Virus record (IMG/VR): IMGVR_UViG_3300022935_000005 | Span: 62,001 to 126,000 of that record | Length of the DNA stretch: 64,000 nt | Strand: one strand, 5' to 3' | Shown: positions 2-61,134 of the stretch, in pieces | Layout of the letters: each line of letters opens with the position of its first letter | How positions within the stretch are numbered: position 1 is the stretch's first letter | The notes under the pieces: generated by a model | Told to the model about the DNA's origin: nothing | What the model saw: the letters and a program-made list of their open reading frames with translations, nothing else | Databases searched by the model: none | Program-made: the position numbers and the translations under genes

Positions 2-2752
2 ATATTGTCTGGAAGTGTTGTTGTCGCAACCTCGGATAGGGTATCTTTTGATTCAATTAGTACTGCGGGAAATTCGTTACTGATCGGATCAGGCTCAACT
101 TTAGCAATCAGTAGCTTTACGCCAACTCAAACGTTTTCAGGGTCAATCAATAACTTTAGAGTATACCATAAGACAAGAACATCATCTGAAATTGACCGCT
201 ATATAAAAAGGACTCTTTTTGCCGACAGTAACAGCATGAACGTCTTAAACTTAAGGTTTAATGAGGCAACGGGAAGCTATCAAAACAATTCAGTTGTTTT
301 AGATTCTTCTGGTGAGAGTTTACACTCCAGGATTGTCAACTACGACGCCGGAATACGCTCTGAAAAGCCTTACGACAGTTTATGCTTATTTGAAAGTTCT
401 GTATATCATCCTACGCTGTTTCCAAGTCATCCTGACGTCATTTCTTTAAACGAGCAGTTGTTGGTTAGCGCTTCTAACTATGATGCCAATAACCCTAACT
501 TGATAACAAAGCTTATTCCTGATCATTACTTTGAAGTTGCAAAAGCCTCAACTGGACAAAGCGATTATGGCACAACCTTGAACGGTATAGAACAATCACC
601 TGACGCATATTCTGTTCCTGGCGCAGCCAAGATGGGACAACCACAGATCATATCAGCTCTGTTGTTTATGTGGGCCAGAATGTTCGACGAATTAAAGCAA
701 ATGATCGATCATGCATCTGAACTAGTTCATATAGACTATGAATCAGAGGAATCGATAGCGAACCAGCTTTTACCAATGTTATCTGAGTATTACGGTTTTG
801 AGCTTTCTAGCATGTTTAGGAACGCAAGTTATGACCAATTCTTTGACGGTGAATCTATAGTTGCTGGGAAAGTACCGGGCCTTCTGGCACTACAGAACGA
901 AATATGGCGTAGAATATTAATTAATCTACCTGAGATTGTACGATCGAAAGGGACACTGCATAGTATAAAATCCCTATTTAGATCCGCCGGTATCGATCCG
1001 GATAGGATGTTTCGATTCGTTGAGTACGGGAGTGAAAACCAACTTCGGCTCGGCCGGTCAAGAAAAAAGATAACAGAAATATCGACGTTACTAGATTTTT
1101 CGGGAAGTATCTCCTACACTCCCTCTGCTACAACAGACGTACAGGGATACAACAGCAACAAGCCAAACCTAATATCTTCTTTCTTGACTGGGTCTAGGAT
1201 AGAAGTCGGTTATCCTGACATTTCTGGAGTAATGATACAACAGGAAGAGTATTCTCCACACGGCATATCCAACTCTGAAAATGACGGCTTGTTCACATCC
1301 GGAAGCTGGTCGATAGAAAGTAGATTTAAGTTTCCTACAACTAGAAATTTTTATGATCCACAAAGTCTTTTACGACTACACACAACTGGATCGTCTGTAT
1401 CGCACAACGTGATTGTGAACTTGGTAGCAGACCCCAATATTGACGAAGATGCCGAGAATGGAATAGTGACGCTGTATTGCCGACCCGGCTTTGAAACCTC
1501 AGATGATCTATTAACTCTCTCTATTAATGATGTCAACATCTTCGACGGAAATAAATGGTACGTATCCGCGGGAAGAAAGAGAAATGATGAGATAGACAGC
1601 TATGTGTCATCAAGCTACTTTCTGACTCTTGCCAGACAAGAGAATGGCGAGATACTGGAATATTACACAACATCGTCTTTGTTCTTGGACTCAAATGTCG
1701 TTGGAGAAAATGCGTTCCAAAAGAAAGATTATCTTGGCACGACGCTGAACGCATCAGGCTCTTTCATAGTGGTTGGAAGCCAGACACTAGACGACTCTAT
1801 TTCTCGCCACTTAAATGATAGCACAATAGTTGAAAAAGCTAGAACAACAAACTTTTCTGGGCTAATGGGTCACACAAGGTTTTGGTCGAAAGCCTTGACA
1901 CAAGAAGAAATGAAAGAACACACGAGGAACTTTACTTCTTTGGGTGTAGAAGACCCTCTAAAGAACTTCGGTTTTTCTCATGAGATCACTGGTTCATTCG
2001 AGAAACTGAGACTAGATATCTCGACAGACCAACCTGTTACCACAACAGATGTCAGCGGTGTAATAGACCCCTTGATAGATTTTTCGCAACAGTTTGCGTC
2101 TAGCTCTAACCCAGGAGGGTTCAGCACTCTTAGGGGCTTTGAGGCATCGACTCAAGTCATAAAGCCTGAAAGATTCGACTATAGCGCGATATCATATCTT
2201 TTTGACGAGCCATCGACATCTAATAAGGTGAGGATATTGGGTATGACAGAAGGCGAGAACATTGCAGAGTATGACACGCTACCAGCTCCGATATATGAGA
2301 TTCCAAGAGCCACTGAGCCTGTAGACGATGTAAGATTCTCAATAGAGTTCTCAGTATCTCAAGCTCTTAACGAAGACATTATGAAAATCTTTGCCACACT
2401 AAACGCCCTTGACACCGCTCTTGGTTCACCAAACACTATGTTTTCAGAAGAGTATTTCGACCTCCGTCAGATGAGAGAGATATACTTCAACCGCTTGGTC
2501 GGGGAAGTTAACTACACTAGCTTTTTTGAGTTTTTTAGATGGATAGACCAGTCCTTCGATTCGATGGTAACTAACCTAATACCCAAGAAGACTAACTACA
2601 AGGGATTCAACATGATTGTTGAAGGTCACGCCCTAGAAAGAAGTAGGGTTCCATACAACACCGGTGACATATACCTCGGCGAGAATGATAGAAGAAATCT
2701 CAAGGGAACCATACTATTAAGACAGCTGGTCGGTAACATAAGGAAGATTTGA
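2..2752 (+). CDS. Baseplate wedge-like structural protein (P2 gpI/T4 gp7-like core plus LamG-like domains); 5'-truncated
   Basis: Frame is open from the window start. Motif LPMLSEYYGF...IWRRILINLPEIVRSKGTLHSIKSLF resembles the gpI/gp7 core. FSGSINNFRVY, WSIESRFK, FDGNKWYVS and FSGLMGHTRFWSKAL are LamG-like strands. Confidence 0.6.
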   Translation: MLSGSVVVATSDRVSFDSISTAGNSLLIGSGSTLAISSFTPTQTFSGSINNFRVYHKTRTSSEIDRYIKRTLFADSNSMNVLNLRFNEATGSYQNNSVVLDSSGESLHSRIVNYDAGIRSEKPYDSLCLFESSVYHPTLFPSHPDVISLNEQLLVSASNYDANNPNLITKLIPDHYFEVAKASTGQSDYGTTLNGIEQSPDAYSVPGAAKMGQPQIISALLFMWARMFDELKQMIDHASELVHIDYESEESIANQLLPMLSEYYGFELSSMFRNASYDQFFDGESIVAGKVPGLLALQNEIWRRILINLPEIVRSKGTLHSIKSLFRSAGIDPDRMFRFVEYGSENQLRLGRSRKKITEISTLLDFSGSISYTPSATTDVQGYNSNKPNLISSFLTGSRIEVGYPDISGVMIQQEEYSPHGISNSENDGLFTSGSWSIESRFKFPTTRNFYDPQSLLRLHTTGSSVSHNVIVNLVADPNIDEDAENGIVTLYCRPGFETSDDLLTLSINDVNIFDGNKWYVSAGRKRNDEIDSYVSSSYFLTLARQENGEILEYYTTSSLFLDSNVVGENAFQKKDYLGTTLNASGSFIVVGSQTLDDSISRHLNDSTIVEKARTTNFSGLMGHTRFWSKALTQEEMKEHTRNFTSLGVEDPLKNFGFSHEITGSFEKLRLDISTDQPVTTTDVSGVIDPLIDFSQQFASSSNPGGFSTLRGFEASTQVIKPERFDYSAISYLFDEPSTSNKVRILGMTEGENIAEYDTLPAPIYEIPRATEPVDDVRFSIEFSVSQALNEDIMKIFATLNALDTALGSPNTMFSEEYFDLRQMREIYFNRLVGEVNYTSFFEFFRWIDQSFDSMVTNLIPKKTNYKGFNMIVEGHALERSRVPYNTGDIYLGENDRRNLKGTILLRQLVGNIRKI

Positions 2753-3681
2753 TGACATCACAAAGAGTTTTAAGTGGCAGCAAATCAAAAGGTTCTACTG
2801 CTACGCTAACAGGATCAGTGCAATATTTCTATCAAGGAACTAGCGTAAGAACGTTCTCTTCTTTTGTGGGTAGTCTACTCCCAAGGATGGGTTCAGGTGA
2901 CCGTATCGAAATGTACAAGGACGGCTCCCCGATTGATACATTTGATGGGTTTGATGACTCTATAATCATAAATAACAACTCTGCTGATATGGGCGGAGAA
3001 AATGATGGAAAAAGAATAGAAGAAAGAGTCAGTCATGACTACGAGAACCGTGGGTTTGGTCAACCCACACTTACACTGAAGGGCGAGCCTTACGCTGATA
3101 CTATTAAGTTTGATCCTGTCATCTATATAAAAGACTCTCAAGAAGTCATGTGGCCAGTTAACATGTGGAATGCTGGGTCATTGGACGATCACGAGTTCGA
3201 TGGTGTTATTGAGCCTTTAGATATCCGACGAGAAGTGTTTGGAGAGATAATCACAAAGTATGAGGGTCGTTCTATAAGGGGTGCACTGGTCGGAGCAGCA
3301 TCGGAACAACCCTGGGGTAGCAAGCAGATAGAAAGCGCTTGGTACATAAGTGACAACAGCTGCCGTCCATTTCTAGATGCGCCAACAGTCTTTTCTCTTG
3401 ATGATAGTGAGACGCCGATAGCAAGTCAGGCATACCAAGACATAGAACAATCAGCAGATTCTGCCTTTTTAGAGAAAGATACTTATCATGACAGAGTTTA
3501 TTTTTCTTTGCTAACTCACAATAATAGTGATATGAGAACAGCCTTACGTCAATTAAACAGTTCTTCTTGTGATAGTTTGACTGACCCTTTTGAGAAAAGG
3601 GCTAATAGAGGTCTTACTGAAGGTCAGAATGTCGGTTCATTGGCGTTTAGTAATCTGCTTGTAGTTGGGGAGCAGTCGTGA
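2752..3681 (+). CDS. Hypothetical virion-associated protein
   Basis: ~310-aa ORF. ATG overlaps the upstream TGA and the ORF overlaps the next gene. Confidence 0.55.
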   Translation: MTSQRVLSGSKSKGSTATLTGSVQYFYQGTSVRTFSSFVGSLLPRMGSGDRIEMYKDGSPIDTFDGFDDSIIINNNSADMGGENDGKRIEERVSHDYENRGFGQPTLTLKGEPYADTIKFDPVIYIKDSQEVMWPVNMWNAGSLDDHEFDGVIEPLDIRREVFGEIITKYEGRSIRGALVGAASEQPWGSKQIESAWYISDNSCRPFLDAPTVFSLDDSETPIASQAYQDIEQSADSAFLEKDTYHDRVYFSLLTHNNSDMRTALRQLNSSSCDSLTDPFEKRANRGLTEGQNVGSLAFSNLLVVGEQS

Positions 3682-6600
3682 AAGATACAAAGAACTCACC
3701 ATTTATACACGATATATCTAAATCTCTTGTCATTACAGGGTCTGCCGTTCCGGCGGCTGTCTCGTATGTGCGGTTTAATCACTTCCAAGATTCCGATACT
3801 GAGACCGGGACGTACATAACTGATTACGGAAACCCTACACAGCCATATAAGGTAGTGCAAGGAGACCGCGGTAATAACACGGGGAATTTTTGGGCGACGA
3901 CAGGATCACTAGACCAGCTAGACATATACGGAGAGAAGGTATACACGGATGAGGTTGTCCAGCCAGGTCTTAAAGTAAGAACTCTAATGAGCCAAAGGGG
4001 ACTGTCTCTACCGTTAAGCTCAGATCCTGTGTTTATATCAAAAGATATGAAAGACCTGTATTCGGATACAGATTGCGCATTGACTTTTATGGTCAAGCTG
4101 AAGTTGACCAGTGAATTAGAGTCGGATAAAGCTGTCATTATACTTGCTGACCATCCGCCCCCGGGTCCAGTCGTCGCAGCAACAGACGTTTTCTCTATTG
4201 CTCTGGATCATACGGAAGTAAAATGTGATTTCCAAAGTGTGTTCACGGGTGTACCACCGTTCCAGCTAAGTCTTTCAACAACTGGTCTCGCAACTTCTAC
4301 GTTCATAACAGTGTTTGGATCTTTTTCTGTTTCGTCTAGTGGGCTCATGACGGCTGAAAGATTCGCTGTCTACAGCACAGAGACGGGAGAAGAGCTGCAC
4401 TATGCATCAACTCTCCCCGCCGTCCTTAACAACGCTCCAACCCTTAATAATCCCGTGCTTTACGTTGGTTATGGAACAAAGAGCGTTAGCGGAGGGGTAA
4501 ATAACGAATTTCTTGAAGCAGATTTTGTAGAAGTAGATTTAGCTGAGATCGCAATATTCGATTCTGTCCTAACTCAAGAGCAGATGCAGACAATAGCTCG
4601 GTCGCATCTAGCAGAAAATCAATACAAGTCTGGATTCAACAACCGCTCACCAAGAAGAACGCAGCAGCTTTTAGATGCCAGAACTGTCTATCCGGCTTCT
4701 TCTAACCCAAGCTCTCCCGTAACTTCTGCTCCTGTCTTTAATGATCAGTTCACCAAGGTGTATGGAATCCAGCCCCAGTCAGGATCGGTTTCAGGAATTA
4801 TGTATCCCGAGATGTTACCAGCTTATATGTTTTCTGGAAGTGATGATTCTCGAGGTGCGGAAGGAAACGTAAAGCCGTTCTACAGAGACTTACATCAGAC
4901 TGAGTATGACAAAAGGTTGGTCGGCCCTGGTGTAATGAGACAGGGTCTGTCGCATAAAGAAACAGAGATACTTAATGTAGGTACTAGAAATTCTCCAATT
5001 GTGATCGGTGAGGACTCTGACGCTCTTGGCGGTACTATAGAGCCGTTTAATGATAACCATCCATTAGCTGATAAAAATGAGCAAGTCGCAGTAAGTGAAG
5101 ATGTGATACCGGGCTTGAATCAGCGCCTTGGTGATCATGTCGCTATCATAATTGACCTGAATCCAGTTGATGATACTACAATCGGTGTCGAAAGAACAGG
5201 CGGTGCGAAGTCTTGGCTTGGAGAGACCACAGGTCGTGTAACTTCGATGGCTTACTTTAACTTCGCCACTAGAAAGTGGGAAACAGCAGGCAAGAATAAC
5301 GACTTCGTGATACCGGGTGCTATCACGGTAAGCACTGGATCTGCTGTTGGTACAGGCACGATAGCTGATAAACTCGTCGATATATACACAAATGGATTTC
5401 AAGAGCTTGTCAACAGCTCTTCTATCGGGTTTGCTGGTACATCTGGATTCACGATTTACGAAGATAAAGGAAGTAGCGCATTTGCACCTCTAGCCTCTAG
5501 AGGCGCTCCAGTCACTTCTTATGGTTTTCCGTTACACCAGAAATACGAAGCAAAAGACGAACAGCTCATAGACATGTCTGATTATATCGACGCTCCGTTC
5601 GTTGTTGAAAGAGTTGCGTTTGAGGTTGGCGTAGCAGTAGAGGACTCTGGACCCCATTCGCTGGGCTACAAGTTAGAGACAAATCAAGACAATTCCAACC
5701 CGGGCGATAATTCGCAAATGCCGAACTTAAAATTCACGGCTGATGTCGATACTCCGATGGCAGCATTTCATGAGCATAATGAGTACGCGAAGCTTGTAGA
5801 CCATATGAGGGTGGAGGTTTCGAGAGGAAGCTTTATTAATGGCTCGTGGTGCATTGACGTCAATGACTTTAGCGCAGGAAGAGGGACTACGGTTGCAAGG
5901 TGGAACCGCCCGAGAGATTACCCTTACATGGCGTATTGGGACGCTAACACACTAAAAAATCGTTGTATAGCTTCAATATTTCTAGGTTATCAAAACCATC
6001 CACGCCAAGAGATACCAAACGCAGATTATAATCAACCCTACAGAGGCCTTAGTTTTCCTGTCCTTCCTGATAGACAAGCAAACCCGGGTTTTAGGTTTGT
6101 GATGGGAGCAGGCAGTCTATGGTCATACGCTGATTATTTCGGTCTTAATCCCGGCAACTACCCGGCAAGGATGATGCTACCAGTCGTTCCCGGCCCAAGG
6201 ACGGCTTCTGACCCCGGACACTCTCCCTCTTTACAAGGGTGGAATGATGGTGCCGCGTTACCTCCATCCAGAGACGAAAATGAGCCCGTTGCTGACTGGG
6301 CATTCGCTGATGTTAACGTTTCTTACATACCTCTGCTAGCAGCAGGTGTGAATGGACTAGTCACTGGATCAAACGACCCAACTGGTATCCGGAGACCTAC
6401 CCAGCATCCCATATCGTTCGTTGAGAAGCGTACTTATAAAACTCAGAACTGGGAGGACGTTAGCGCAGCTAGTATTAATGACTGGGGTCTTTTTGAAGAG
6501 CCTGGTGTTCCTTTCTGGAGAGCTGACACGTTCTTTTTGCTGAGACAGACAAAGTCAGATGAGAAACTAAAAGTGCAGTTTTCATTTGAGTTTACGTCGG

Positions 6601-9600
6601 ATAGCTCTAAGGTGTTTTTCCCGTTGTGCCCGTGGGCAACCGGGCAGCAGCCTCAGAAGATTTACGGTATGCGGTTCGACTCCGGTGGCATAAAATTTAG
6701 AAGAACAACCAACCGAGAAATGGAGCAAATGCATGGTTACAGGTGTGTAACATCTCGCGCGTGGTATGGCGACTTCTCTGGTTATCCTCCTGTTGACCCG
6801 ACAAACGGTGTCTTGCTCGCCAACGGAGCTGAACTTAAGACATTATATTCTATAGGGAAGAGTGACCTTAAGGTCGGGTGGGAAACTGAGACAGACACGA
6901 TCAGAGAGCTAGTCACATTCGGCCAGGTCACACATTACGGGTACTGCGCTGCTCAAGACGGCTATGTCGACAAGATAGTAAACACCGCCAACATAGACCG
7001 TGGACTCGGATTAACATCAGGATCATGGGATGGCGACTTTCGGACAGCTGTCGTCGACACACGTCAAGCGCTATTTGGACAAGCTATGAAGCTCAGCAGG
7101 ATGCAGACCGCTGGGAACTCTGTAATACCTGCCGACCCTTTCACTGTTAATGCCACGTACGCAACACAATATTCTCAATTTTCTGACGCACCAAATTCTT
7201 TCCAGGGTTCGTGGTCTTTTTCTCCCGGGGAATCCCATCTTGATGGCTTTAGAAACTGGTTACCGTCTTTTACATGGGCTGATAGCGAGACCAACCCCGC
7301 CTCCCCCAATTCCTCCACACCTACTACGGGTATCAATATAAGCGGCCAGGGTCGTTATAAAACTATGACGTTCGACGGTGCTTCATACAGTGAACAACTT
7401 CTTTCGTTCCCTCGGTGGACCGGTACTTCGTATCATGCGGGTGGCGCCGATGTTTCTCATACTCTGGATAATTGGCAACCGTTGTTACTTGTGCAGAAGT
7501 CGCAGGTCCGAACCTTGTCTGGATCTTGTCTTTGGGATTTATGGGACGCCGTTGATAACCAGATGCAAGAATATGCCGGTACCGGCACCTCTGAAAGAGA
7601 GATTGAACCATTAATCCCGGGCGGTTCTGGATTTTCAATAATATCTACTCCGGCGTGGCCAATTGGGTCGACAGATGCAGTTGATCGTGAAATTAATAGT
7701 GAAGGTGTTATCAGATATACATCAGCAGGTGATCAACCGTACTTATTTGGCCGTATCACCGCAGGTATTGAAGCGGATGGTTTTCCCGGTACGAACGTAG
7801 GTAATCCACCCGTCTACCAAAGATATGCCGATTTTAAGTGGTGGGGTGGTTTCGACACTCCCCCACTTTCAAGACCATCTCAAATAACGGATTTTCTTGG
7901 CGAGCGCCCGTTAACTGGCTGGTTACAGGCTGGGCTAGGCAAGGAAAAGAATATCTACATTGGTCAAGGCGCAAAGCACGGAGGTACCAATATAGATTAT
8001 GATGACAACTGGTCTGGCTTTACGTTAATGACGGCATCCACAGTGTATCGTCCTTGGGGGATCCCTGGAAGCGAAAATGCCACTCTTCCACTGCACGCTA
8101 ATGTGTATAAGAGACAGTGGTTAAACTATGAAGAAAACTTAACATTTGAAGTGCCAATAAAAACCGTGACGCCGACAACAGCTCATGATTCTGGATACTG
8201 GGTTGTGACAGCAGAAGATGTGTGGGGCCCACAGCTGAGTGATGTCGAAGGAACGCCGGGTGTAATATTTGTGCCATTTTCACCCACAGGCGCGGCCAGC
8301 AAGCAGGCTATACCTTGGATAAACAGAACTGCCTCTAACTTCGCTATGCATGCGAAGAGGTACCACAGAAGGTACACGATGTCACCATCTCGAGGCGGAT
8401 ATAACGTTGGTCCTCTGGCTGATGGATTTAACTCTGGCCGTGTTTTCTTTAGAAACGTCGCTGCTGCGACCCAGTCTGGTGCGCAGTTTCAGAGAAAATT
8501 CACACCAAGCATCTTACATGGCAACGGCCGGATAGAGAATGAAGGTACCATCGACCCAACCCTCGAAGCCCAACAAATATATTACGAGGATAGGTATAAC
8601 TCTCAAGATCAGGCTTTAGTGACAGGAAGCATCGCGACAGAGCAGGCGCAGCAGTCTCTCTATGTGTTAAAGCCGTCTGATAAGCTTATTTTAGGTGTGC
8701 AACCTTCTTTACCCGGGTGGAATGCCGGCTCTGGACTACCGAACAACAGGTGGTCAAATAAATGGGGTACGTGGGATTATAAAGAATCAAATGCTACAGA
8801 GCGTGTAAGAAGCCTAGACGCCGATGTTGACGGAACGCACAAAGACTGCTTGATGAACCTAGAAGATCCCTATGAGCCTTGTCACGGCCTGACGATGCTC
8901 AAAGGTCCCAGCCGGATTGTTCTGTACGGTTCATTCTTACGTGATAACAAACATTACTCTCCAAGCTCTAAGCAACAGCTTCGCTCTGCTGCTGTGCACG
9001 AAGCACTTCACTATGACAACCCTGTACTTGATCAGTTCTTAACTGATAACGCATATGAGTACACAGGTAATACCCTGGCTCAACACATCACTGGTAGCAT
9101 GTTGGATGGTGATAGAGGCGTTGCGGGTACACTGGCAGCGGGTAACTTAACATTCAGTGGAAGCTTCCAAAGGTTCACCAGAGCGACTGAAGATAGTCAA
9201 GTGTTTTATGACACGCTTTTGCATGATCCTTTTGATATATGCGAAATAGACGGGGTCGTTCGAAAAGGAATACAAGCAGGAGGCTACGCTGTCATTAACA
9301 TGTTTATGCCTAATGACTGGTTAATTCCGACGACTGCAGAGTATATTGACACCGCCACCATCAACCTCGTCACAGACTACGCTTTTTCTAGTGCATGGCC
9401 GCATTCTTTTCCTTTTGAAGAAAAGTATTCTAACGTAAAAAGATTGGTTTCACGAGATCTATCGTTCGTCCCTAGAAGATTAGGTTTTGGCTCTCTCCTC
9501 GAACCAAATTCCCTCTACTTTGGGCTGTCAAGCGCCATGTATCAGTATCCCCTAGGGTCATCTCCCCTGCAACTTAATAACGAAGACGCAAGTGACCCAT

Positions 9601-39500: not shown

Positions 39501-39697
39501 ACGTACTCATAATAGATGAAGGGTTTGGAGCTTTAGATGATAAGAACATTGAGGCATGCTCCAGACTGCTTGAATCTCTTAAGAAGTATTTTGCAAACAT
39601 ACTTATCATATCTCACGTTGATGCTATGAAAGACGTGGTTGATAACGTCTTGGACATCCAAAAGAACGGAAAGGACTCATATGTCAGATGCACATGA
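36554..39697 (+). CDS. Fused Mre11/SbcD nuclease - Rad50/SbcC ATPase (T4 gp47-gp46-like)
   Basis: Phosphoesterase motifs ADIH, GGDIVH, GNHD, H and LGDIH. Walker A GKNRVGKS, Q-loop SQG, coiled coil, signature SGMEK, Walker B/D-loop IIDEGFGALD, and ISH. Confidence 0.92.
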   Translation: MTLKCAHFADIHFRGLSRHDEYRKVFSQSFEKLKELQPDIIFLGGDIVHSKTQGISPELIDILRWWFTSLADIAPVHIILGNHDGLMTNEDRLDAVTPIVRAIGDPRIKLMKGTGVYPTGIPGYNWCVFCCFDPKGWPDLKPPEDGINIALYHGPVNGSLTDQDWEINGDSVKVDFFKGFDYTMLGDIHKRQFLTEKVAYPGSTIQQNYGEDVEKGFLFWEIRDKDDFDVKFIELKNDHAFRSIKWQGDVSSTLDEVQDDWTGSRFRVIHKGMTQTEFKQLQNSLREKYDAYEVVSKNEQESFKGADTEIATSIGKISRNDLRSFKQQDALMSEYVKRMELSDEDRQSLRELHKDVFGRCVQEASAKSHQWRLRRLNFDNTFGYGEGNIIDFDTLNGITGIFGKNRVGKSSIPGTISYSLFNASDRGTLKNIHIVNNRKNYCKAAADFSVAGEMWRAERQTVKRTNRNGVVSAPTNLNLFRIDESGNPIEDATGEQRRETEKTLRELVGTVDDFMMTSFASQGGMDAFIKEGSTQRKNILTRFLDLQIFDDMLKIAKGEMSELRGEMRSAPDRNWQELIDEQSSLGEKLNLEISEVEEELVSLKKDRDDLKIKLAALPDSELYTKEQIQEQVQKLSDMNTKRETLSKKIIELSNSIDTASKKIEKIGLIKEQFPIEELRKEFDTQKALQSQQELIESKLELELQRLDSKKKSAKKLERVPCGDQFPKCPYIKDAHKSASELDDQKLVITGVRKELRALKSNIQALMEKGLSERLLKYEDLLKKESSLRISHSDFRLEMKEIESDHQDAINFIKEGKTQLREMRLRSIDEEKDTAVIAMRDQLKKVEDRISNLDAERLYLTEQISVAKQKKITLIEENRRFGAVKSRWETYNVFMQAVDKKGIPLTILSLQLPQINNELTKILQGVVNFDLSLEADLESNNMEIFIDYGDSRRIIECGSGMEKMISSLALRVALINVCNAPRSDVLIIDEGFGALDDKNIEACSRLLESLKKYFANILIISHVDAMKDVVDNVLDIQKNGKDSYVRCT

Positions 39698-51132: not shown

Positions 51133-51160
51133 GCGGGGTCCCTTCGGGGGCCCCGTTTTT
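51133..51160 (+). terminator. Intrinsic terminator after major capsid gene
   Basis: GCGGGGTCCC-TTCG-GGGGCCCCGT followed by a T tract. Confidence 0.92.
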
Positions 51161-51221
51161 GTTTTAACCTATTTTTGATTCGATTATTATTGATAAAATT
51201 TGCTTTGCAAAGGAGAAACTT

Positions 51222-51542: not shown

Positions 51543-51575
51543 GAGCACCCCGCCGTTTCGATTCATAACTTTCAT

Positions 51576-51606
51576 AAAGACATTTCACCGCCTCGGTGAA
51601 TACTTA
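51576..51606 (+). promoter_or_regulatory. Extended promoter AAAGACATTTC-N11-GAATACTTA (neck operon)
   Basis: Same bipartite layout and spacing as 54784-54814. Confidence 0.6.
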
Positions 51607-51621
51607 AAAAGAGGTGGTGTT

Positions 51622-52788
51622 ATGTCTTCATTTACGTTTACTAGAAATCCTACGCCGTTTGGTTTTTTTGATACAGATGCAGACTTTCAGTCTGAAGCAG
51701 ACTCTGTTGTCACCTTTGTAAAAAGAAAACTAGGCGATGATATTCTTAGTGTCGAGCTGACAAAAAAGCAGATTTGGGCGTGTCTAGAAGAAAGTTTTCT
51801 AGAATACTCTAGAATCATTAACGAAGCCGATGCTAAGTCTCAACTAAATAATCACTTGGGCTATCCCACTGGGAGCGACGTCCAAGGGTTATTCCCTAAG
51901 CAGAACCTTGAATATCTCTTAAGGATGGCCGAACCCTACTCTATGGAGTCGGGAATCGGTGGTTCTTATAACGATGTCAGTGGCTCAATCCAACTGGTGG
52001 AAAACCAGCAAGACTACGATATATACGAGAGCTTGGTGGATGATGCAGGTAACCTGATTGTTTCCAGCAGCGCGAATACTCCAAGGAATAAGATGAGAAT
52101 CAGAGAGGTATTCCACTTTGATCCTCAAGCTGCTTATCGTTTTTTTGATACCACGTCTGCTGTCAATTATCTAAATAACGAGTTTAGCTTTGAGTCATTC
52201 ACACCTGAAACGGTGTTTTATGTACTTCCTGTGTTCGAAGACGTCTTGCGCGCCGGTCAGATGGACATATCAAATAGAGTAAGAAAATCAAACTACTCTT
52301 ATAGGGTCGTCGGAAGTAAGATCAGGATATTCCCACAACCAACAGGGGATATGACTAACAAGAAGCTCTGGATTAGAGTTGCTTTTAATCCCGATCCATA
52401 TAATCCTGACGTCACTGATGAAACAATCTATGGCACGTCGAACCTCTCGAATATCCCATTCGGCTTGTACGAATATAGTAAGGTTAACTCGATGGGCCGC
52501 CAATGGGTCCGACAATACTGCTTAGCGCTCTGTACAGAGTTGTTAGGGCAAGTTCGATCAAAGTTTTCATCTATTCCAATCCCGAACTCTGATTTAACGC
52601 TAAACGGAAGTGATCTGTTAAGCCAGGGACGTGAGGATCAAGCACGTTTACGAGACCAGATGGTAGAGCTCTTAGATAGTTTAACCTACTCTAAACTGCT
52701 AGAAGGACAAGCAACAGACGCAGAAAATATTCTAAGAGCGCTAAAGACTATGCCAATGCCGTTAGGCAAAGCAATACTAATCAAGTAG
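51622..52788 (+). CDS. Neck/head-tail adaptor protein (T4 gp13-like)
   Basis: KRKLG...VELTKKQI and WVRQYCLAL..ELLGQVRSKF...LNG motifs; position after the capsid gene. Confidence 0.8.
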   Translation: MSSFTFTRNPTPFGFFDTDADFQSEADSVVTFVKRKLGDDILSVELTKKQIWACLEESFLEYSRIINEADAKSQLNNHLGYPTGSDVQGLFPKQNLEYLLRMAEPYSMESGIGGSYNDVSGSIQLVENQQDYDIYESLVDDAGNLIVSSSANTPRNKMRIREVFHFDPQAAYRFFDTTSAVNYLNNEFSFESFTPETVFYVLPVFEDVLRAGQMDISNRVRKSNYSYRVVGSKIRIFPQPTGDMTNKKLWIRVAFNPDPYNPDVTDETIYGTSNLSNIPFGLYEYSKVNSMGRQWVRQYCLALCTELLGQVRSKFSSIPIPNSDLTLNGSDLLSQGREDQARLRDQMVELLDSLTYSKLLEGQATDAENILRALKTMPMPLGKAILIK

Positions 52789-52797
52789 CGAGGAGCC

Positions 52798-53460: not shown

Positions 53461-53462
53461 AG

Positions 53463-54848: not shown

Positions 54849-57800
54849 ATGGCCGAACAAACATTTAGATCACCCGGTTTTTTCGAGAGAGAGATTGATG
54901 CATCTCAAAGACAGACAGAAATTGTGGGTGTTCCCGCAGGAGTAGTAGGTACCGCCGAGAAGGGTCCCGCTTTCGTTCCTGTTACAGTAGGAAGCACAGC
55001 AGATTTTGTTAACAAGTTTGGAACAGTAGATCCAGAAAGATTTGGACCGTACGCTGTAGATGCATTTCTTTCGAACAGAACTGCTTTGACATACGTTAGA
55101 GTACTGGGTGCTGGCGCGAATGAGACCGCCGCTGATATAACAAATACACAGAACACAGGGACCGTCTTAAACGCCGGGTTTAAAATTGAACCTATTATTT
55201 CTGATTCACCAATGAGTGCATCGGACAGTTCAGTCCAGTTCATCGTTGCGCGTCACGATGTATCCGCGTCAGCAGATTATTCGTTCCCGCAGTTTACAGA
55301 CAACCCTTCATTTGATCCAGGGAACACTGGCGACAAGGTTGACCTTGTTCGTGCTGTTGTTTTAACGGCATCAGGCTCACGCTTACAGGTTCTCGACATC
55401 GGAGAGACTTGGGGCAATGAGCTCGATCAAAACGCTGATCTAAAGAACGATTCAAGCCACGCTGCGAACCTTTGTTTTGCTCTGGCAATTTCGTCTTCGG
55501 CTGGTGCTGCTTTTACTAACGAATACCTTGATCAGGCTGGTGCGGGTGTTAAGATTGTTACTGCTTCGTTGAATCCGACACATCAATCATACATTACCAA
55601 TGTTCTGAATACTGACCCTCTGAAGTTCGCTGAAGAGAAGCACTTGCTATATCTCGACTTCGCGGTTGAAGATGAGTTGGCTTCTGTAGATGTTAACGCA
55701 GCACCAGCTGTAAGTGTCCTGTCAGGATCTAACAACGTGGTTACAACTGCTCTAACTGGCAATGCTGCCAAAGCTTTGAATGCGTTTGGTCGATTCGACA
55801 CAAGGTTTAGAACACCGAAATCACCTGCGATTATTTCACAGCCCTATGGAAAGAAAGAGCACGATTTGTTCCACTTCGAGACGCTTTCAGATGGTGAGTG
55901 GGGTAATGACAAAGTCAAGATCACCATAGCTAATATTAAGGCGTCGACAAACGACAACTACCCTTACCCAAGCTTCGAGGTTCAAGTACGTCGCTTTGAT
56001 GATTCCGATCTTGATCAGCAAGTCTTAGAGGCATTCCCAGGATGTGTCCTTGATCCAGACTCAGATAACTTTATCGGTAAGAAAGTCGGTGACTACAAGG
56101 CACGTTACAACTTCGACGCCACGAACGCGGCTGAAAAGAGAATCATCGTTACCGGTCGTTATCCAAACGTCTCAAATTTCGTGAGAGTTGTTCTTAACGA
56201 TGCAGTCTATAACAAGACCCTTCCAAGAGACGCATGTCCTTTCGGGTTCCGCGGCGTTCCGGTAATCAAGACTTCTGACGCGATGACAGATCGCCTCCAT
56301 ACAGGTCTCGAGCTCGACGGTATAACTTATGGTCAGGCAGGAGCGTCTCTTCAAAGGTTGTGGGGTGCTGATAAGTTAACCACTAGATACGCACTAACCG
56401 GTTCAATCGTTCCTCCGCTACCTCTTCGTTACAAGGTAACGCGTGGTGATGCAAAGGATGGCTGGTTCTCAGGTTTCCCTGGAGAGAAAGAGCTTGTTGA
56501 TAAGCGTCTCAACTGGGGTGTTAAGTACGAGCGTTGTCCAGAAACCGGAAGTATTGCAAACGCGAATCAGAACGTTAACGCTTCTAGCGTTCTCAACCCT
56601 CTAGTCCGTGCGTACTCTAAGTTCCAAGGGCTAGCAGAGATTGGCACTATTCTTACTGGCTCTGGCGCTGATGCCTTTAACGCTAACAAGTTTACTCTTG
56701 CTAGAGTGGTTCTTGCAGGTACTGGCTCTACCGCCTCGACGCTGCTAGACAACCTAACCGGATCCGCTCCAGAACATATGCTTGAAGCTGCGTACATCAG
56801 AAACGGTGTACCGGACTCCAAAGACTACACGATCATGGATCCGGATCTTTCTGATTACGGCAGAATTACTCTAGCGACTCTAATCCAGAGTTCATCAGTG
56901 AAGTTTAACCGCTTCACACCGTACACTGCTTTCAACATTCCAGTATTCGGTGGGTTTGACGGTGTTAATATCTTAGACAAAGATATGAGATACATGAACG
57001 ATAGAGCGGCATCGACAGATGATACCTCGAGCGTTGATGGTCAGATCGGAAAGGCCGCGTCTGGTTTCAGCGCTGGTACAATCGGTCTGAGGTCGAACCC
57101 AGGCGGTACTGGACGAAAGAACAACAGCATTGCTTCTTACAGAGAAGCCGCGACGATTATTACTGATCCCATGTCTACAAGGATTAACATCCTAGCAATT
57201 CCTGGAATCAGGGACTCATATGTCACGGATTGGGCCGCAGAGAGAACGAAGGACTACTCTATGGCTATATACCTCATGGATATTCCTGCGTGGTCTGAAG
57301 CCCAAGCACGTCTATTCCTCACTGAGGACCGCGAAGCTATCGCGTCTGCATCGATTGCGTGGCCTGATGTTAGAGAAACAGCTGAGCAGTTTGAGTCCAG
57401 AGTGTTTGATAATAACTACTCTGCGACGTACTTCCCAGATGTGTACATCACCGACAAGACCACTGGAAGCAGAGTAAGAGTTCCCGCTTCTGTGGCTGCT
57501 ATTGGAGCTTTGGCTTACAACGATTCAGTCGCATACCCGTGGTTCGCTCCGGCAGGTTTCAACAGAGGTGGCCTTGACCAAGTCAAGAACACAGACATTA
57601 GGTTGACGGCTGGTGATAGAGACACGCTATACGACGCAAGGATCAACCCGATTGCAAACTTTGCTGATGGTAGCTTCGTAATCTTCGGTCAAAAGACTTG
57701 CCAGCTCGCTCAAAGCGCGCTTGATAGAGTTAACGTCCGTCGAATGATGCTAGAGTTGAAGCGACAAGTTGTATCCGTTGCCGATAAGATTCTATTTGAG

Positions 57801-58037
57801 CCTAACACTCCTGCGACCAGAGCTCGTTTCGTTAATTCTGTTACACCGCTCCTGGCTACCATACAGTCTCAGCAGGGTATTGAGTCTTTTAGAGTCGTGA
57901 TGGATGATACCAACAATACTCAGGAAGACGTTGAGAACAACAGACTGAACGGTCGCATTGTTGTGGTGCCAACAAGGGCTATCGAATTTATTGCTATAGA
58001 TTTTGTCATTACAAACAGTGGCGTAGACTTCCAGTAG
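54849..58037 (+). CDS. gp18: Tail sheath protein 1 (gp18-like)
   Basis: FRSPGFFEREID, GTAEKGPAFVP, PWFAPAGFNRG, LYDARINPI, FGQKT, ALDRVNVRRM, FEPN and EFIAIDF. Confidence 0.93.
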   Translation: MAEQTFRSPGFFEREIDASQRQTEIVGVPAGVVGTAEKGPAFVPVTVGSTADFVNKFGTVDPERFGPYAVDAFLSNRTALTYVRVLGAGANETAADITNTQNTGTVLNAGFKIEPIISDSPMSASDSSVQFIVARHDVSASADYSFPQFTDNPSFDPGNTGDKVDLVRAVVLTASGSRLQVLDIGETWGNELDQNADLKNDSSHAANLCFALAISSSAGAAFTNEYLDQAGAGVKIVTASLNPTHQSYITNVLNTDPLKFAEEKHLLYLDFAVEDELASVDVNAAPAVSVLSGSNNVVTTALTGNAAKALNAFGRFDTRFRTPKSPAIISQPYGKKEHDLFHFETLSDGEWGNDKVKITIANIKASTNDNYPYPSFEVQVRRFDDSDLDQQVLEAFPGCVLDPDSDNFIGKKVGDYKARYNFDATNAAEKRIIVTGRYPNVSNFVRVVLNDAVYNKTLPRDACPFGFRGVPVIKTSDAMTDRLHTGLELDGITYGQAGASLQRLWGADKLTTRYALTGSIVPPLPLRYKVTRGDAKDGWFSGFPGEKELVDKRLNWGVKYERCPETGSIANANQNVNASSVLNPLVRAYSKFQGLAEIGTILTGSGADAFNANKFTLARVVLAGTGSTASTLLDNLTGSAPEHMLEAAYIRNGVPDSKDYTIMDPDLSDYGRITLATLIQSSSVKFNRFTPYTAFNIPVFGGFDGVNILDKDMRYMNDRAASTDDTSSVDGQIGKAASGFSAGTIGLRSNPGGTGRKNNSIASYREAATIITDPMSTRINILAIPGIRDSYVTDWAAERTKDYSMAIYLMDIPAWSEAQARLFLTEDREAIASASIAWPDVRETAEQFESRVFDNNYSATYFPDVYITDKTTGSRVRVPASVAAIGALAYNDSVAYPWFAPAGFNRGGLDQVKNTDIRLTAGDRDTLYDARINPIANFADGSFVIFGQKTCQLAQSALDRVNVRRMMLELKRQVVSVADKILFEPNTPATRARFVNSVTPLLATIQSQQGIESFRVVMDDTNNTQEDVENNRLNGRIVVVPTRAIEFIAIDFVITNSGVDFQ

Positions 58038-58071: not shown

Positions 58072-61000
58072 ATGGCTGAACTTACCTTTAAAAGTCCGGG
58101 AGTGTCCACTAGAGAGATTGATCTTTCTGGCCCAACCCAAACGGGACCGAGTGGAATTCCTGCTGGTGTAATCGGAACCGCCAAGCAAGGTAGAGCATTT
58201 GTTCCGATCACTGTCGCAACATTTGCCGACTTCATCGCGGAGTTCGGAGATGTAGAGACAACGCTCTTCGCTCCGATGGCAATGAGACAGTGGTTAAGTT
58301 ATGCAAATGCTGGAACTTTCGTTCGAACCCTTGGTGCTGGTGACGGAAAGAAGAGAACCGCAACCGGCGCAGTAACAAACGCTGGGTTCGTTGTTGGGTC
58401 GCAAACTATCCAAACAAACGGTGCTATCGGAAAGAACGGTTATGCTGGATCGACTACAATAAACCCCGGAGCTCTTGGTAGGGCGCACTTCCTGGGTGTC
58501 ATTATGTCTCAATCAAATGGCTCCGATGTGTTCACAGATGCTGGACTTCAAGCTGTACAACCGATTCTCAGAGGTGTTCTCCTGGCACCCTCTGGTGTCA
58601 ACCTTGCGTTGAGCTCTTCAAGATACGAGACCACCAATAACCTTCCGCTGGGTGCACCCACTGCGAACAACTACGCTGCAAATTTCGCGTTCGGCACCGG
58701 CGCGGCCCAAGATGCTGGTTCAACGCTTGGTGCTGTTAACATCGGAGGTGGTCGCCAAGAGTTCGTGATTTTACAGAATGGTCACACTCACACTGACAGC
58801 TATCCAACTGTCATTACAGCGTCTTTTGATGTTGATGCTCCAAATTACTTTGGTAACATTCTAAACACTGATCCTACGAAGACAGAGCTAGCAGGTCACT
58901 GTCTGTATGCTCAATTCAACGTTCCTCCCGCGTTTGCGGTATGCTCAGGCTCATTGCGGATGGTCTCGACCTACAGTGCGTCTTTCGACGGTGTTAAAGA
59001 GGGTGTCACAATAAAGAACGAAGAGATTGCATTCCTCCTGACCGGTTCAGCAGGCAGAAACACAGGGACTACAACGAAGCCGAACTTTGAAGCCTTTACA
59101 GACAGGTTCCGGACTGCAAAGTTCCCGACTATAATTTCACAGGAATTCGGTGGTCAAAACAAAGACTTATTTACCGTTCACTGTCTTGATGATGGAGCGA
59201 TTGGTAACCACCGAGTTAAGATCTCTGTTGAGAACATTGTCAAGTCAACGAACGTAAACAATAAGTACGGCACGTTCGATCTGCTCGTTAGAGATTTCTA
59301 CGATACCGATGCTGAGCCGAAAGTTTTGGAGCGGTTTGTTAAGTTAAGCCTTGATCCTAATAACGAACGGTACATTGCTAGAGTGATTGGTGACTACAAT
59401 ATCTTCTACGATTTTGACAAGCGTGCTGGTGGCCAGAAGCTTGTTGTAGAAGGAAGTTATCCGAATGCTTCGAATTACGTCAGAGTATCTCCGTCAGTAG
59501 ACATGGAGCGTGGCACACTTCCTGCAACTGCTTTACCGGTAGGTTTCCGAGGAGTACCTCACTTGGTGACGTCTGGATCATCTATATTCGCAGATCCAAC
59601 TGCTTATGATGTCACAAGCGTTCTTGATGATGCTGAAGTCGCCGCGCAGCTGGTCCAGCCCCCGGTTCCGATGAGAAGAACTGTCGCTCAAGGTCTTGCG
59701 CCAAGAAAGAGAGTTAACTCATCCCTATACTGGGGTATCCAGCACGAGAAGCTGCAGAGTGTGGCACAGCCCAACTCTTCGACCACACTGGACGCCTCAA
59801 TCGATTCATACGGATTGTACTTCCCGACTTGGGACGTTGTGAACCAAGCAGCAATGGTTGGAGCTAATCCTGGCGTTGCTGATAATGATGGAACAATCTA
59901 CGATTGTGATAGATTCAATAACAACAAGTTCTCACTTGAGAAAATTCAGGTCATCACCAATTCTAGTGACGAAGCCGATGCTCAACAGTGGGCCGCTGCT
60001 ACCTACAGAAGGAAGGGTCTCGCTGAGGCGACAATGAATGACATTGATGGTAGTTCGTCGTCATCTACACGACTGCTTAGCGTAGAGAAAGACTTTGGTC
60101 TCTCGACTGCTCGTCCGTTCCTTAAGTTCACCATGATCGCTCAAGGTGGCTTCGACGGTCTAGACGTCTTCAATGAAGAAAGGGTCAAGATGACCTCTCC
60201 AGCCGTCAGAAGAGAAATGACATATGAGAACCAAGGTCTCATTGCTGGACCTACTGTGGCGGCTTACAGGAAGGCTCTAGATGTTATGGCTGAGAGATCA
60301 GACGTAGACATCCAGTTGTTGGCGATTCCAGGCATTCGTCACAGCGGAGTTACTGATTACGCGATCACAACCGTCGAGAATAGATTTGATGCAATGTACA
60401 TCATGGATATCGAGGTTGAAGACGTTCTTGGTAATATCGTCTCCGGGTCCGATCAAGATGTCAGTGTTACAAACACTGCAGCAACTTTCGCGGCAAGAAA
60501 TCTAGATTCAAGCTTCGCGGCTGCATACTTCCCCGATGTTGTAATGACAGATCAAACATCAGGTGCTGCTTCTTCTGCTCCACCAAGTGTAGCGGTTCTT
60601 GGGGCTTTCGGTCTAAATGACCAAGTTGCCTTCCCATGGTACGCCCCCGCCGGCTTCACCCGCGGCGCTCTGAAGAACGTAGTAGAGACACAGGTCAAGT
60701 TGAACAGAACAAATCTTGATACTCTCTACGAAGTAGACATCAACCCGATTACGTCGTTCCCACAATCACCAGAGGTTGTCGTGTTCGGACAAAAGACTCT
60801 TCTAGCCGCCCAAAGTGCTCTAGACAGAGTTAACGTACGACGACTCTTGATTGATATCCGTCGGCAAGTTAGAAAGATTGGCGATACATTCTTGTTCGAG
60901 CCAAACAGGGAGTCCACGCTGGCAAGGTTCTCAGCAGCGGTTACTCCGGTCTTAACTAGAATTCAACAGCAACAAGGCCTTGAGCGGTTCAAGGTTCAGA

Positions 61001-61134
61001 TCGATACCACAACGACTACTCAAGCTGATATCGAAAACAACACTGTAAGAGGTAAGATCTTCTTGCAGCCAGTACGTTCTGTCGAGTTTATCTCACTCGA
61101 CTTTGTTGTAACGAACGCTGGTTTGGACATATAA
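58072..61134 (+). CDS. gp18: Tail sheath protein 2 (gp18-like paralog)
   Basis: FKSPGVSTREID, PWYAPAGFTRG, INPI, FGQKT, ALDRVNVRRL, FEPN and EFISLDF. Confidence 0.93.
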   Translation: MAELTFKSPGVSTREIDLSGPTQTGPSGIPAGVIGTAKQGRAFVPITVATFADFIAEFGDVETTLFAPMAMRQWLSYANAGTFVRTLGAGDGKKRTATGAVTNAGFVVGSQTIQTNGAIGKNGYAGSTTINPGALGRAHFLGVIMSQSNGSDVFTDAGLQAVQPILRGVLLAPSGVNLALSSSRYETTNNLPLGAPTANNYAANFAFGTGAAQDAGSTLGAVNIGGGRQEFVILQNGHTHTDSYPTVITASFDVDAPNYFGNILNTDPTKTELAGHCLYAQFNVPPAFAVCSGSLRMVSTYSASFDGVKEGVTIKNEEIAFLLTGSAGRNTGTTTKPNFEAFTDRFRTAKFPTIISQEFGGQNKDLFTVHCLDDGAIGNHRVKISVENIVKSTNVNNKYGTFDLLVRDFYDTDAEPKVLERFVKLSLDPNNERYIARVIGDYNIFYDFDKRAGGQKLVVEGSYPNASNYVRVSPSVDMERGTLPATALPVGFRGVPHLVTSGSSIFADPTAYDVTSVLDDAEVAAQLVQPPVPMRRTVAQGLAPRKRVNSSLYWGIQHEKLQSVAQPNSSTTLDASIDSYGLYFPTWDVVNQAAMVGANPGVADNDGTIYDCDRFNNNKFSLEKIQVITNSSDEADAQQWAAATYRRKGLAEATMNDIDGSSSSSTRLLSVEKDFGLSTARPFLKFTMIAQGGFDGLDVFNEERVKMTSPAVRREMTYENQGLIAGPTVAAYRKALDVMAERSDVDIQLLAIPGIRHSGVTDYAITTVENRFDAMYIMDIEVEDVLGNIVSGSDQDVSVTNTAATFAARNLDSSFAAAYFPDVVMTDQTSGAASSAPPSVAVLGAFGLNDQVAFPWYAPAGFTRGALKNVVETQVKLNRTNLDTLYEVDINPITSFPQSPEVVVFGQKTLLAAQSALDRVNVRRLLIDIRRQVRKIGDTFLFEPNRESTLARFSAAVTPVLTRIQQQQGLERFKVQIDTTTTTQADIENNTVRGKIFLQPVRSVEFISLDFVVTNAGLDI

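Follow-up and report, generated by a model that had tools for sequence, protein, structure and literature searches.

An ordered Ser/Thr-Gly-Ser tripeptide is enriched in outward-facing virion proteins of a Far-T4 phage lineage and co-occurs with a pair of GT4 glycosyltransferase genes

The outward-facing tail, fibre and sheath proteins of a 281-kb T4-like phage (IMG/VR record IMGVR_UViG_3300022935_000005) and its relatives carry about four times more Ser/Thr-Gly-Ser ([ST]GS) tripeptides than expected by chance. The excess is a trait of one Far-T4 lineage, in which an adjacent pair of GT4 glycosyltransferase genes is found in every enriched genome that is complete or nearly so. This suggests, but does not prove, that the phage particle is sugar-coated at this motif.

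Over-representation of [ST]GS in virion proteins

To determine if the [ST]GS motif is over-represented, we counted its occurrences in a 64,000-nucleotide stretch of the genome (positions 62,001 to 126,000; hereafter the window) and compared these to composition-preserving shuffles of each protein, as had been proposed when the motif was first noted. The 19 structural ORFs of the window contain 105 [ST]GS sites against 25.7 expected (z 15.8), and the maximum observed in 500 shuffles was 42. The other ORFs contain 6 sites against 3.6 expected. In an unbiased scan of all 8000 tripeptides over the 356 ORFs of the phage, TGS and SGS rank first and second. The observation made in the first-pass annotation is therefore real, and is stronger than was proposed there; its manual counts for the first ORF, sheath 1, the capsid, the fibres and the Mre11-Rad50 fusion are exact. 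The positions and site counts of each feature are shown in Table 1.

Table 1. Features of the window and of the upstream region, with [ST]GS sites observed and expected from shuffles. Coordinates are window positions unless marked as genome positions.
Position	Strand	Feature	Sites	Expected	Remarks
2..2752	+	C-terminal 916 aa of a 1169-aa ConA-like/LamG_3 (Laminin_G_3) virion protein	10		ORF starts upstream of the window; full ORF at genome 61243-64752 has 13 sites against 1.73 expected
2749..3681	+	310-aa protein	2	0.55
3678..10307	+	2209-aa fibre or baseplate giant	12	2.69	p 2.5e-5; no Pfam hit
10332..17585	+	2417-aa fibre	30		About 20 sites inside ~8 tandem ~80-aa repeats (SVVATLTGSVF.., GLSGSLQTL.., ITISGSEGR..)
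17585..19201	+	538-aa fibre	10	1.41	Shares the repeat unit with the 2417-aa fibre
19624..21030	+	468-aa fibre-like protein	3	1.22
22634-30538		Three Gly-poor proteins			No excess
31306..32586	+	426-aa clade-core virion protein	3		Homologues in other enriched phages have 4-6
32599..35034	+	811-aa LamG_3-containing protein	12		All 18 homologues keep 6-12 sites against about 1.2 expected; some sites conserved, some lineage-specific gains
36554..39697	+	Mre11-Rad50 fusion (negative control)	1	0.51
49193..51106	+	Gp23-type major capsid protein	4	1.07	Residues 158, 179, 216 and 331, in the N-terminal/insertion part; homologues have 0-3
51622..52788	+	388-aa head-tail adaptor-like protein	2		Homologues have 2-5 against about 0.3
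54849..58037	+	Tail sheath paralogue 1 (1062 aa)	8	0.83	Residues 175, 292, 517, 566, 603, 625, 637 and 872
58072..61134	+	Tail sheath paralogue 2 (1020 aa)	4		One position shared with sheath 1
63254..64000	+	Start of a 1472-aa tape-measure-like protein	0		Internal virion protein
Genome 36.7-50 kb		Variable GT2/GT10/GT11/sulfotransferase island
Genome 51284-52549		First GT4 of the pair (GT4#1)			Pair lies about 8-11 kb upstream of the window
Genome 52552-53727		Second GT4 of the pair (GT4#2)

Four points of the first-pass annotation required correction. SSS, listed there as a variant of the motif, is not enriched, and [ST]AS is only a weak variant at about 2x in virion proteins. About 20 of the 30 sites in the largest fibre sit in internal repeats and are not independent. 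The excess in the capsid is marginal. Finally, the description of the motif as virion-wide overstates the case, as the tape-measure-like giant, two further giants, the portal, the tube and three Gly-poor proteins show no excess; the annotated tape measure of Flavobacterium phage immuto likewise has 0 sites against 1.1 expected. The pattern fits outward-facing proteins rather than all virion proteins.

Specificity for residue order and for virion modules

To confirm that the excess was not due to local richness in Ser, Thr and Gly, we compared each tripeptide to its anagrams. In the virion modules TGS occurs 53 times against 9-20 for its five anagrams and SGS occurs 50 times against 15 and 25, while in the remaining 67,000 aa TGS occurs 25 times against 20-26 and SGS 33 times against 30 and 35. 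The regional z-scores of the virion modules are 16.6 and 7.3, with no significant excess elsewhere. In seven enriched proteins, with the repeat fibre left out, [ST]GS occurs 73 times against 11.3 in shuffles (z 17.7), while SGT, TGT, GS[ST], GTS, [ST]SG, STG, [ST]G[DN] and [DN]G[ST] all stay at 0.8-1.7x. XGS is enriched only where X is S or T, [ST]GX only where X is S, and [ST]XS only where X is G.

The motif is encoded by more than 40 different 9-mers, and this diversity of codons indicates selection at the protein level. The virion proteins are rich in S, T and G and the fibre repeats carry many sites; however, an artefact of composition, internal repeats or a DNA-level signal is refuted by the shuffles and anagram controls run with the repeat fibre removed, and the excess is reproduced in homologues from 18 other contigs and in cultured phages. 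BLAST detects no paralogy among most of the enriched proteins. Lineage-specific gains arise from unrelated tripeptides, such as NNR/NGR to TGS in a sheath hairpin and ATN, LTK or YDE to TGS in the family of the 811-aa protein, supporting independent accumulation of one short motif in unrelated virion proteins.

Structural context of the sites

The eight sites of sheath 1, the one protein that could be modelled well, were mapped onto an AF2 model. All lie in turns, loops or helix N-caps, with two in hairpins, two at helix N-caps and four in loops, and seven of the eight lie in the inserted outer domains. An unmodified structural element, such as a small-polar/Gly turn or cap (type II'-like G-S turn, ST-turn or helix N-cap) favoured by the beta-rich outer virion proteins of this lineage for folding, assembly or stability, is thus a serious rival to a modification signal; in that case the glycosyltransferase genes would serve another purpose, such as modifying the host envelope. 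Many sites are conserved in position over 45-57% identity and between the sheath paralogues, next to equally conserved flanks, as would also be expected of an unmodified element. Hydrophobic residues flank both sides in 39% of virion sites, which fits a strand-turn-strand element, and in the sheath family the number of distinct TGS columns is no higher than for its anagrams, with only retention being raised.

We nonetheless consider this rival the less likely reading. The sheath sites do not share a single backbone context, and structurally equivalent residues are not enriched ([ST]G[DN] 1.0x, [ST]GT 1.3-1.5x, [DN]G[ST] 0.9x). Generic turn statistics would also favour N, D or T after the Gly and would apply to all proteins, neither of which is seen: the enzymes of the same phage show no excess, nor do the sheath or fibres of T4, PTm1, P-HM1 or LR756508, and the orthologous sheaths of T4 and LR756508 have 0 sites. 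Orthologous turns carry unrelated sequences elsewhere. A preference that is specific to both clade and compartment needs a clade-specific reader.

Distribution of the excess among phages

The excess is found in this phage, two IMG/VR relatives (G001 and G002), immuto, Rhodothermus phage RM378 and Microcystis phage Mel-JY01. The Gp23, portal and TerL proteins group with RM378-type sequences, apart from T4 and the cyano-T4 phages, placing the phage in the Far-T4 group (PMC4360716), although RM378 itself sits on a long, poorly placed branch. T4, PTm1, P-HM1, XacN1 and LR756511 show no excess of TGS or SGS over anagrams, so that no generic structural bias explains it. The excess does not follow the host phylum, as the unrelated Bacteroidota phages phi38:1, FCL-2, B40-8 and PTm1 lack it while the Microcystis phage has it.

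A glycan island and a predicted GT4 complex upstream of the window

A search of the rest of the genome for glycosyltransferases was positive. A 17-kb glycan island lies just upstream of the window (genome 36.7-53.7 kb), between fibre genes and the structural module, and encodes at least 8 glycosyltransferases (4 GT2, GT10, GT11 and 2 GT4), a GDP-mannose dehydratase (GMD), an epimerase, 2 DegT aminotransferases and 2 sulfotransferases. None of the 22 island ORFs has a predicted membrane segment and the genome has no polytopic Wzx/Wzy/OTase-like ORF, although host enzymes could supply lipid-linked, membrane-bound steps. The DNA of immuto consists of three canonical nucleosides plus fdPreQ1 (PMC10516641), so its glycosyltransferases are unlikely to be DNA glycosyltransferases. 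No glycosyltransferase of the phage matches a curated protein-glycosyltransferase family, and sugar islands in aquatic phages are usually read as host-envelope modifiers.

The two GT4 genes are adjacent in this phage, G002, immuto, Mel-JY01 and RM378 (as a divergent copy), which are all of the enriched genomes that are complete or nearly so; G001, only 39% complete, shows no pair in the part available. These phages infect three different phyla. In Mel-JY01, GT4#1 is annotated as two ORFs, yet this phage is enriched. Complex prediction supports binding between the two GT4 proteins, with a score of 0.87 against 0.00 for the best of 3 controls, a mark that was reached by 51 of 78 solved complexes and 2 of 108 mismatched pairs. 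The runs agree in at least 96% of contacts and the pLDDT of the partner is at least 91.

LR756508 is nested within the enriched clade as sister to immuto and Mel-JY01 (TerL support 96/94, portal 99/99). It keeps GT4#1, a GT10, GMD and an epimerase but has no GT4#2 and no GT2, and it also has no motif excess. Enzyme and motif therefore co-vary among these relatives, but the link rests on this single nested loss.

Possible function of the motif

The first-pass annotation interpreted the motif as a convergently gained recognition signal, for example an O-glycosylation site for a phage- or host-encoded enzyme that coats the particle, and this interpretation is partly supported. On present evidence we tentatively favour, at somewhat less than even likelihood, a role for [ST]GS, often flanked by hydrophobic residues, as an acceptor sequon for cytoplasmic O-glycosylation, kept under selection on the fibres, baseplate periphery, sheath outer domains and, weakly, the capsid insertion of one Far-T4 lineage. 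In this view the GT4 pair would place the first sugar on a serine of the motif, with the invariant third-position Ser the likelier acceptor, and the variable island would then extend the glycan so that the released particle carries a glycan coat. Our analysis shows the motif excess, its order specificity, its restriction to virion modules, its distribution across the clade, the glycosyltransferase island, the predicted GT4-GT4 interface and the joint loss in LR756508. That the glycosyltransferases act on virion proteins, that any glycan is covalently attached to them, which enzyme starts the glycan, which residue accepts it and what the glycan is are inferred, as there is no biochemical evidence of any modification.

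A more far-reaching form of this hypothesis, which we consider doubtful though not excluded, is that a heterodimeric phage GT4 reads a strict [ST]GS sequon and directs a fucosylated and possibly sulfated glycan coat onto every outward-facing tail, fibre and sheath protein of Far-T4 phages. The coat would then be a phage-intrinsic trait kept across hosts of three phyla that decays when the enzyme is lost.

It is also possible, but unlikely, that the motif is recognized by a different phage-encoded reader, either for another modification of Ser (phosphorylation, acylation or nucleotidylation) or as a docking site for a shared assembly or decoration factor. The same specificity, compartment and clade arguments apply to this reading, and much of the genome has no assigned function, with a PHROGs search returning no hit for 18 of the 20 window proteins queried. 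However, no Pkinase-family gene was found, and no gene other than the GT4 pair and the structural and replication core tracks the enriched genomes at BLAST level. One docking factor for fibres, sheath and baseplate alike is also hard to picture.

Glycosylated phage particles are so far known from a few mycobacteriophages; no short, predictive O-sequon is known for any phage and few are known for bacteria. If [ST]GS marks glycosylation sites, virion glycan coats could be predicted from sequence in a widespread aquatic phage lineage (marine, freshwater and thermophilic), the function of a conserved glycan island usually dismissed as host-modifying would be explained, and the motif and enzyme pair would provide a compact cytoplasmic O-glycosylation tag for glycoengineering. 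If the motif is unmodified, clade- and compartment-specific selection on one ordered tripeptide still needs an explanation. Three of the enriched phages, immuto, RM378 and Mel-JY01, are in culture, which makes the question directly testable.

Comparison to known glycosylation systems

In the mycobacteriophages Che8 and Rita, phage-encoded glycosyltransferases and cytoplasmic modification of structural proteins give a glycan coat on the particle (Freeman et al. 2023, as summarized in PMC11256854). The targets there are reportedly capsid and tail-tube subunits, for which no defined tripeptide sequon is known to us, while here a strict [ST]GS motif is spread over fibres, baseplate and sheath, the island is much larger, with fucosyl- and sulfotransferases, and the modification remains hypothetical. 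Chlorovirus PBCV-1 also carries its own soluble glycosylation machinery and uses non-canonical sequons, but makes N-linked glycans on one major capsid protein of a eukaryotic virus. A chlorovirus GT4, B736L (PDB 3oy2), is among the nearest solved relatives of GT4#1, but this similarity is only generic to GT4.

The two-subunit GT4 O-GlcNAc transferase GtfA-GtfB of serine-rich-repeat adhesins is likewise encoded by two adjacent GT-B genes, and the phage pair, predicted to form a complex, would similarly add sugar to Ser in the cytoplasm at many sites per substrate. There is no family-level sequence match, as NCBIfam and PDB searches give only generic GT4 hits (BshA, MshA, TreT). Both phage subunits keep an EX7E-like motif, and the presumed substrates carry dispersed tripeptides in folded proteins rather than disordered Ser-rich repeats. 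The autotransporter heptosyltransferases TibC/AAH are cytoplasmic enzymes that modify many Ser residues in beta-rich surface proteins, the beta-helical adhesins, but the enzyme fold and sugar differ, the substrate motif sits in regular 19-aa repeats, and there is no homology here.

The general O-glycosylation system of Bacteroidota uses a three-residue O-sequon, D-[ST]-[AILVMT], with a hydrophobic residue after the acceptor, and some hosts of the clade are Bacteroidota. That system is periplasmic and needs Asp before the acceptor, where [ST]GS has Gly before the third-position Ser by definition. Asp precedes the first position in only 2 of 103 virion sites, and [ST]DS is not enriched.

Genomic context

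The window covers bases 62001-126000 of an IMG/VR phage contig that is 280,913 bp in length and about 92% complete, with nearly all genes lying on the + strand, and no alternative genetic code is needed to read it. Searches against Pfam identified a T4-type core comprising the Gp23 capsid, the portal, the large terminase, the two tandem sheath paralogues and the Mre11-Rad50 fusion listed in the table below, together with a gp19-like tube and a T4 baseplate protein. The nearest capsids belong to the uncultured huge phage LR756508, Flavobacterium phage immuto, Microcystis phage Mel-JY01 and Rhodothermus phage RM378, which is the "Far-T4" group (PMC4360716). PHROGs returned no hit for 18 of the 20 window proteins queried.

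Coordinates of features in and around the window
Feature	Window	Genome or other record	Remarks
Repeat fibre, 2417 aa	10332-17585		About eight tandem ~80-aa repeats
Fibre, 538 aa	17585-19201		Shares the repeat unit at up to 67% identity
RuvC-like gene	35034-35567		Just upstream of the Mre11-Rad50 fusion
Mre11-Rad50 fusion, 1047 aa	36554-39697		Mre11 (metallophosphatase) and Rad50 (SMC/SbcC) in one ORF
Large terminase	40294-41892		
Portal	41925-43874		
Gp23 capsid	49193-51106		
Sheath paralogue 1	54849-58037		About 1000 aa; tandem with paralogue 2 and 34% identical to it
Sheath paralogue 2	58072-61134		About 1000 aa; some relatives carry three sheaths in a row
Three giant ORFs of 1472, 1136 and 1023 aa	63254-64000 onward	125254-137000	Follow the tube and baseplate genes
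Fibre, 894 aa		33889-36573	Ends in a Peptidase_S74 intramolecular-chaperone domain, typical of self-cleaving tailspikes
Glycan island, 17 kb		36,771-53,727	Upstream of the window
DNA polymerase III alpha subunit		158322-161936	Bacterial type, with PHP, NTPase, finger and HhH domains
First GT4 (GT4#1) homologue of Mel-JY01		PP395634, 83441-84932	Annotated as two ORFs of 190 and 302 aa

Excess of an ordered tripeptide in virion modules

The first-pass annotation had proposed that [ST]GS recurs in the structural proteins of this phage and not in its enzymes, and this observation holds, with the site counts it gave being exact. Over all 356 ORFs, 191 [ST]GS were found against 80 expected from per-protein composition, and a scan of every tripeptide placed TGS first (92 against 33.5, z 10.1) and SGS second (99 against 46.7, z 7.6). 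Within the window, 19 structural ORFs hold 105 sites against 25.7 in composition-preserving shuffles (z 15.8), where the maximum of 500 shuffles was 42, while the remaining ORFs hold 6 against 3.6. By genome region, 100 sites against 24.6 expected were found in the fibre and baseplate block (55-97 kb), 18 against 4.2 in the capsid-sheath-tube block and 15 against 5.4 in the upstream fibres, while the 235 ORFs of 137-281 kb held 38 against 29.8, which is not significant.

To determine if the excess merely reflects local richness in S, T and G, we compared the motif to related tripeptides in seven enriched proteins, with the repeat fibre left out. In this set [ST]GS occurs 73 times against 11.3 in shuffles, while SGT, TGT, GS[ST], GTS, [ST]SG, STG, [ST]G[DN] and [DN]G[ST] all stay between 0.8 and 1.7x. 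The first-pass annotation had also listed SAS and SSS as variants; [ST]AS is a weak variant at 2x and SSS is not enriched, so that their standing as co-equal variants is not supported. The cleanest control uses anagrams of the motif, as shown in the table below, and together with the permutation controls it rules out S/T/G richness as the source of the signal. More than 40 different 9-mers encode the motif, indicating that selection acts on the protein and excluding a DNA- or codon-level signal. Hydrophobic residues flank both sides in 39% of virion sites, against 15% expected and 12% for anagram sites.

Counts of TGS and SGS compared with their anagrams
Set	TGS	Five anagrams of TGS	SGS	SSG / GSS
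Virion modules, 18,122 aa	53	9-20	50	15 / 25
All other ORFs, 67,000 aa	25	20-26	33	30 / 35

Independence and conservation of sites

Domain duplication or paralogy was rejected as an explanation for most of the enriched proteins. About 20 of the 30 sites in the 2417-aa fibre lie in its ~80-aa repeats, which the 538-aa fibre shares, and the two sheaths are paralogues but share only one motif position. BLAST finds no other relationship among the enriched proteins, except a weak similarity between the two upstream fibres that aligns no shared motif.

In sheath homologues of 45-57% identity several sites are conserved in position, and one is shared by both paralogues and by distant 633-aa sheaths. 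Other sites are recent: the hairpin at sheath-1 residue 872 reads NNR, NGR, NKR, TLT or NDV in relatives and TGS only here. In the family of the 811-aa protein, all 18 homologues keep 6-12 sites against about 1.2 expected, with some sites invariant and others gained from ATN, LTK, YDE or QQA. At conserved sites position 1 alternates between S and T, whereas position 3 is Ser and almost never Thr.

Predicted structural context

An AF2 model of sheath 1 (pLDDT 82, pTM 0.86) resembles T4 gp18 and other sheaths. In this model all eight sites are at turns, loops or helix N-caps, with two in beta-hairpins (175, 872), two at helix N-caps (603, 637) and four in loops. Seven sites lie in the inserted region between the conserved N- and C-terminal core, which by analogy with gp18 is inferred to form the outer surface. 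This mapping rests on the sheath alone, as the AF2 model of the 811-aa protein reached a pLDDT of only 38 and was unusable.

Proteins expected to be internal lack the motif. The 1472-aa tape-measure-like ORF has 13 hydrophobic segments and tape-measure-like language-model features, and it has no sites. The annotated tape measure of immuto likewise has 0 sites against 1.1 expected. The other two giant ORFs, of 1136 and 1023 aa, also have no [ST]GS at all and have no assignable function.

Distribution among phages

SGS and TGS rank 1-8 of all tripeptides in this phage, in the IMG/VR relative G002, in immuto and in RM378, and SGS ranks 2 in G001, a second IMG/VR relative, and 5 in Mel-JY01. The enriched proteins are annotated tailspikes, sheath and baseplate-region proteins. 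T4 shows the opposite for TGS (0.38x), and Tenacibaculum PTm1, Cellulophaga phi38:1, FCL-2, B40-8, cyanophage P-HM1, XacN1 and LR756511 show no comparable signal. The trait therefore follows a phage lineage and not the host phylum, since four unrelated Bacteroidota phages lack the excess and a cyanophage relative has it, and it is not a general property of myovirus structural proteins. Other phage lineages have their own dominant short motifs: the structural genes of XacN1 (AP018399) carry extreme TPT/PTP repeats (TPT 269 against 31.6 expected), and Mel-JY01 has SGT/TSG/GTS repeats.

A glycosyltransferase island upstream of the window

The 17-kb island sits immediately upstream of the window, between two motif-rich fibre genes and the structural block. 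It encodes four GT2, a GT10 and a GT11 (fucosyltransferase families), two sulfotransferases, GDP-mannose 4,6-dehydratase, an epimerase, two DegT-type aminotransferases, a PD-(D/E)XK nuclease and two adjacent GT4 enzymes, GT4#1 and GT4#2. Sulfotransferases are unusual in a phage. None of the 22 ORFs of the island has a predicted membrane segment. The 649-aa GT2 has no relative among solved structures, and NCBIfam gave no protein-glycosyltransferase equivalog. The nuclease-GT4-GT4 core is syntenic in G002, immuto and Mel-JY01, and RM378 has GT4#1 followed by a divergent GT4#2-like ORF, while the rest of the island varies between relatives. The split annotation of GT4#1 in Mel-JY01 could be a frameshift, a sequencing error or a real split, and this phage is still motif-enriched.

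Complex prediction supports binding of the two GT4 proteins, with a score of 0.87 against 0.00 for the best of 3 controls; that mark was reached by 51 of 78 solved complexes and 2 of 108 mismatched pairs. The runs agree in at least 96% of contacts, and the partner's pLDDT is at least 91. Both proteins keep an EX7E-like motif. The DNA of immuto consists of three canonical nucleosides plus fdPreQ1 (PMC10516641), and thus these enzymes are unlikely to glycosylate DNA in that phage.

LR756508 provides the informative contrast. In TerL, portal and capsid trees it lies inside the enriched clade, as sister to immuto and Mel-JY01 (TerL support 96/94, portal 99/99). It keeps GT4#1 but has no GT4#2, as none was found by a profile search with all filters off over 480 of its 484 kb or by a single-sequence search of the whole record, and it has no GT2 either. 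It also has no motif excess: its sheath has 0 sites, and its structural regions show TGS and SGS at anagram level. Enzyme and motif therefore appear to have been lost together, although this is one contrast only and LR756508 keeps other sugar genes. Neither GT4#1 alone nor GT2 presence alone is a perfect correlate of the trait, since LR756508 has GT4#1 without the excess and LR756511 has GT2s without a strong excess.

Interpretation

A generic structural preference cannot explain an ordered tripeptide that is enriched only in the outward-facing virion proteins, occurs only in one lineage and is absent from orthologues elsewhere. Something encoded by the lineage probably reads the motif. The conserved GT4 pair and its island are the only candidate that tracks the trait, and a search for a Ser/Thr kinase found none. 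We therefore tentatively favor a cytoplasmic O-glycosylation sequon. An unmodified turn or cap motif is ranked second and remains a serious rival, favored by the positional conservation and the hydrophobic flanks, and another kind of reader or modification is less likely still. The suggestion in the first-pass annotation that the motif is a recognition signal, for example for a phage- or host-encoded O-glycosyltransferase that coats the particle, is thus partly supported. The excess, its dependence on residue order, its distribution among phages and its absence along with GT4#2 from LR756508 are demonstrated by the sequence analyses, while the outer placement of the sheath sites, the action of the glycosyltransferases on virion proteins and the presence of any glycan at the motif are inferred. 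Nothing in these data shows a modification.

The closest working analogues are mycobacteriophage virion glycosylation (PMC11256854), chlorovirus capsid glycosylation, and the two-subunit or hyperglycosylating cytoplasmic O-glycosyltransferases of bacterial adhesins. The system is not a member of the Bacteroidota D-[ST]-[AILVMT] system, because the Asp and host-phylum criteria fail, and by sequence it is not a member of the GtfA/GtfB families. Literature searches found no report of this motif; if the favored reading is right, it would represent a previously unreported form of virus-encoded virion glycosylation. Apart from the motif, the genome encodes a bacterial-type DNA polymerase III alpha subunit in a T4-like phage.
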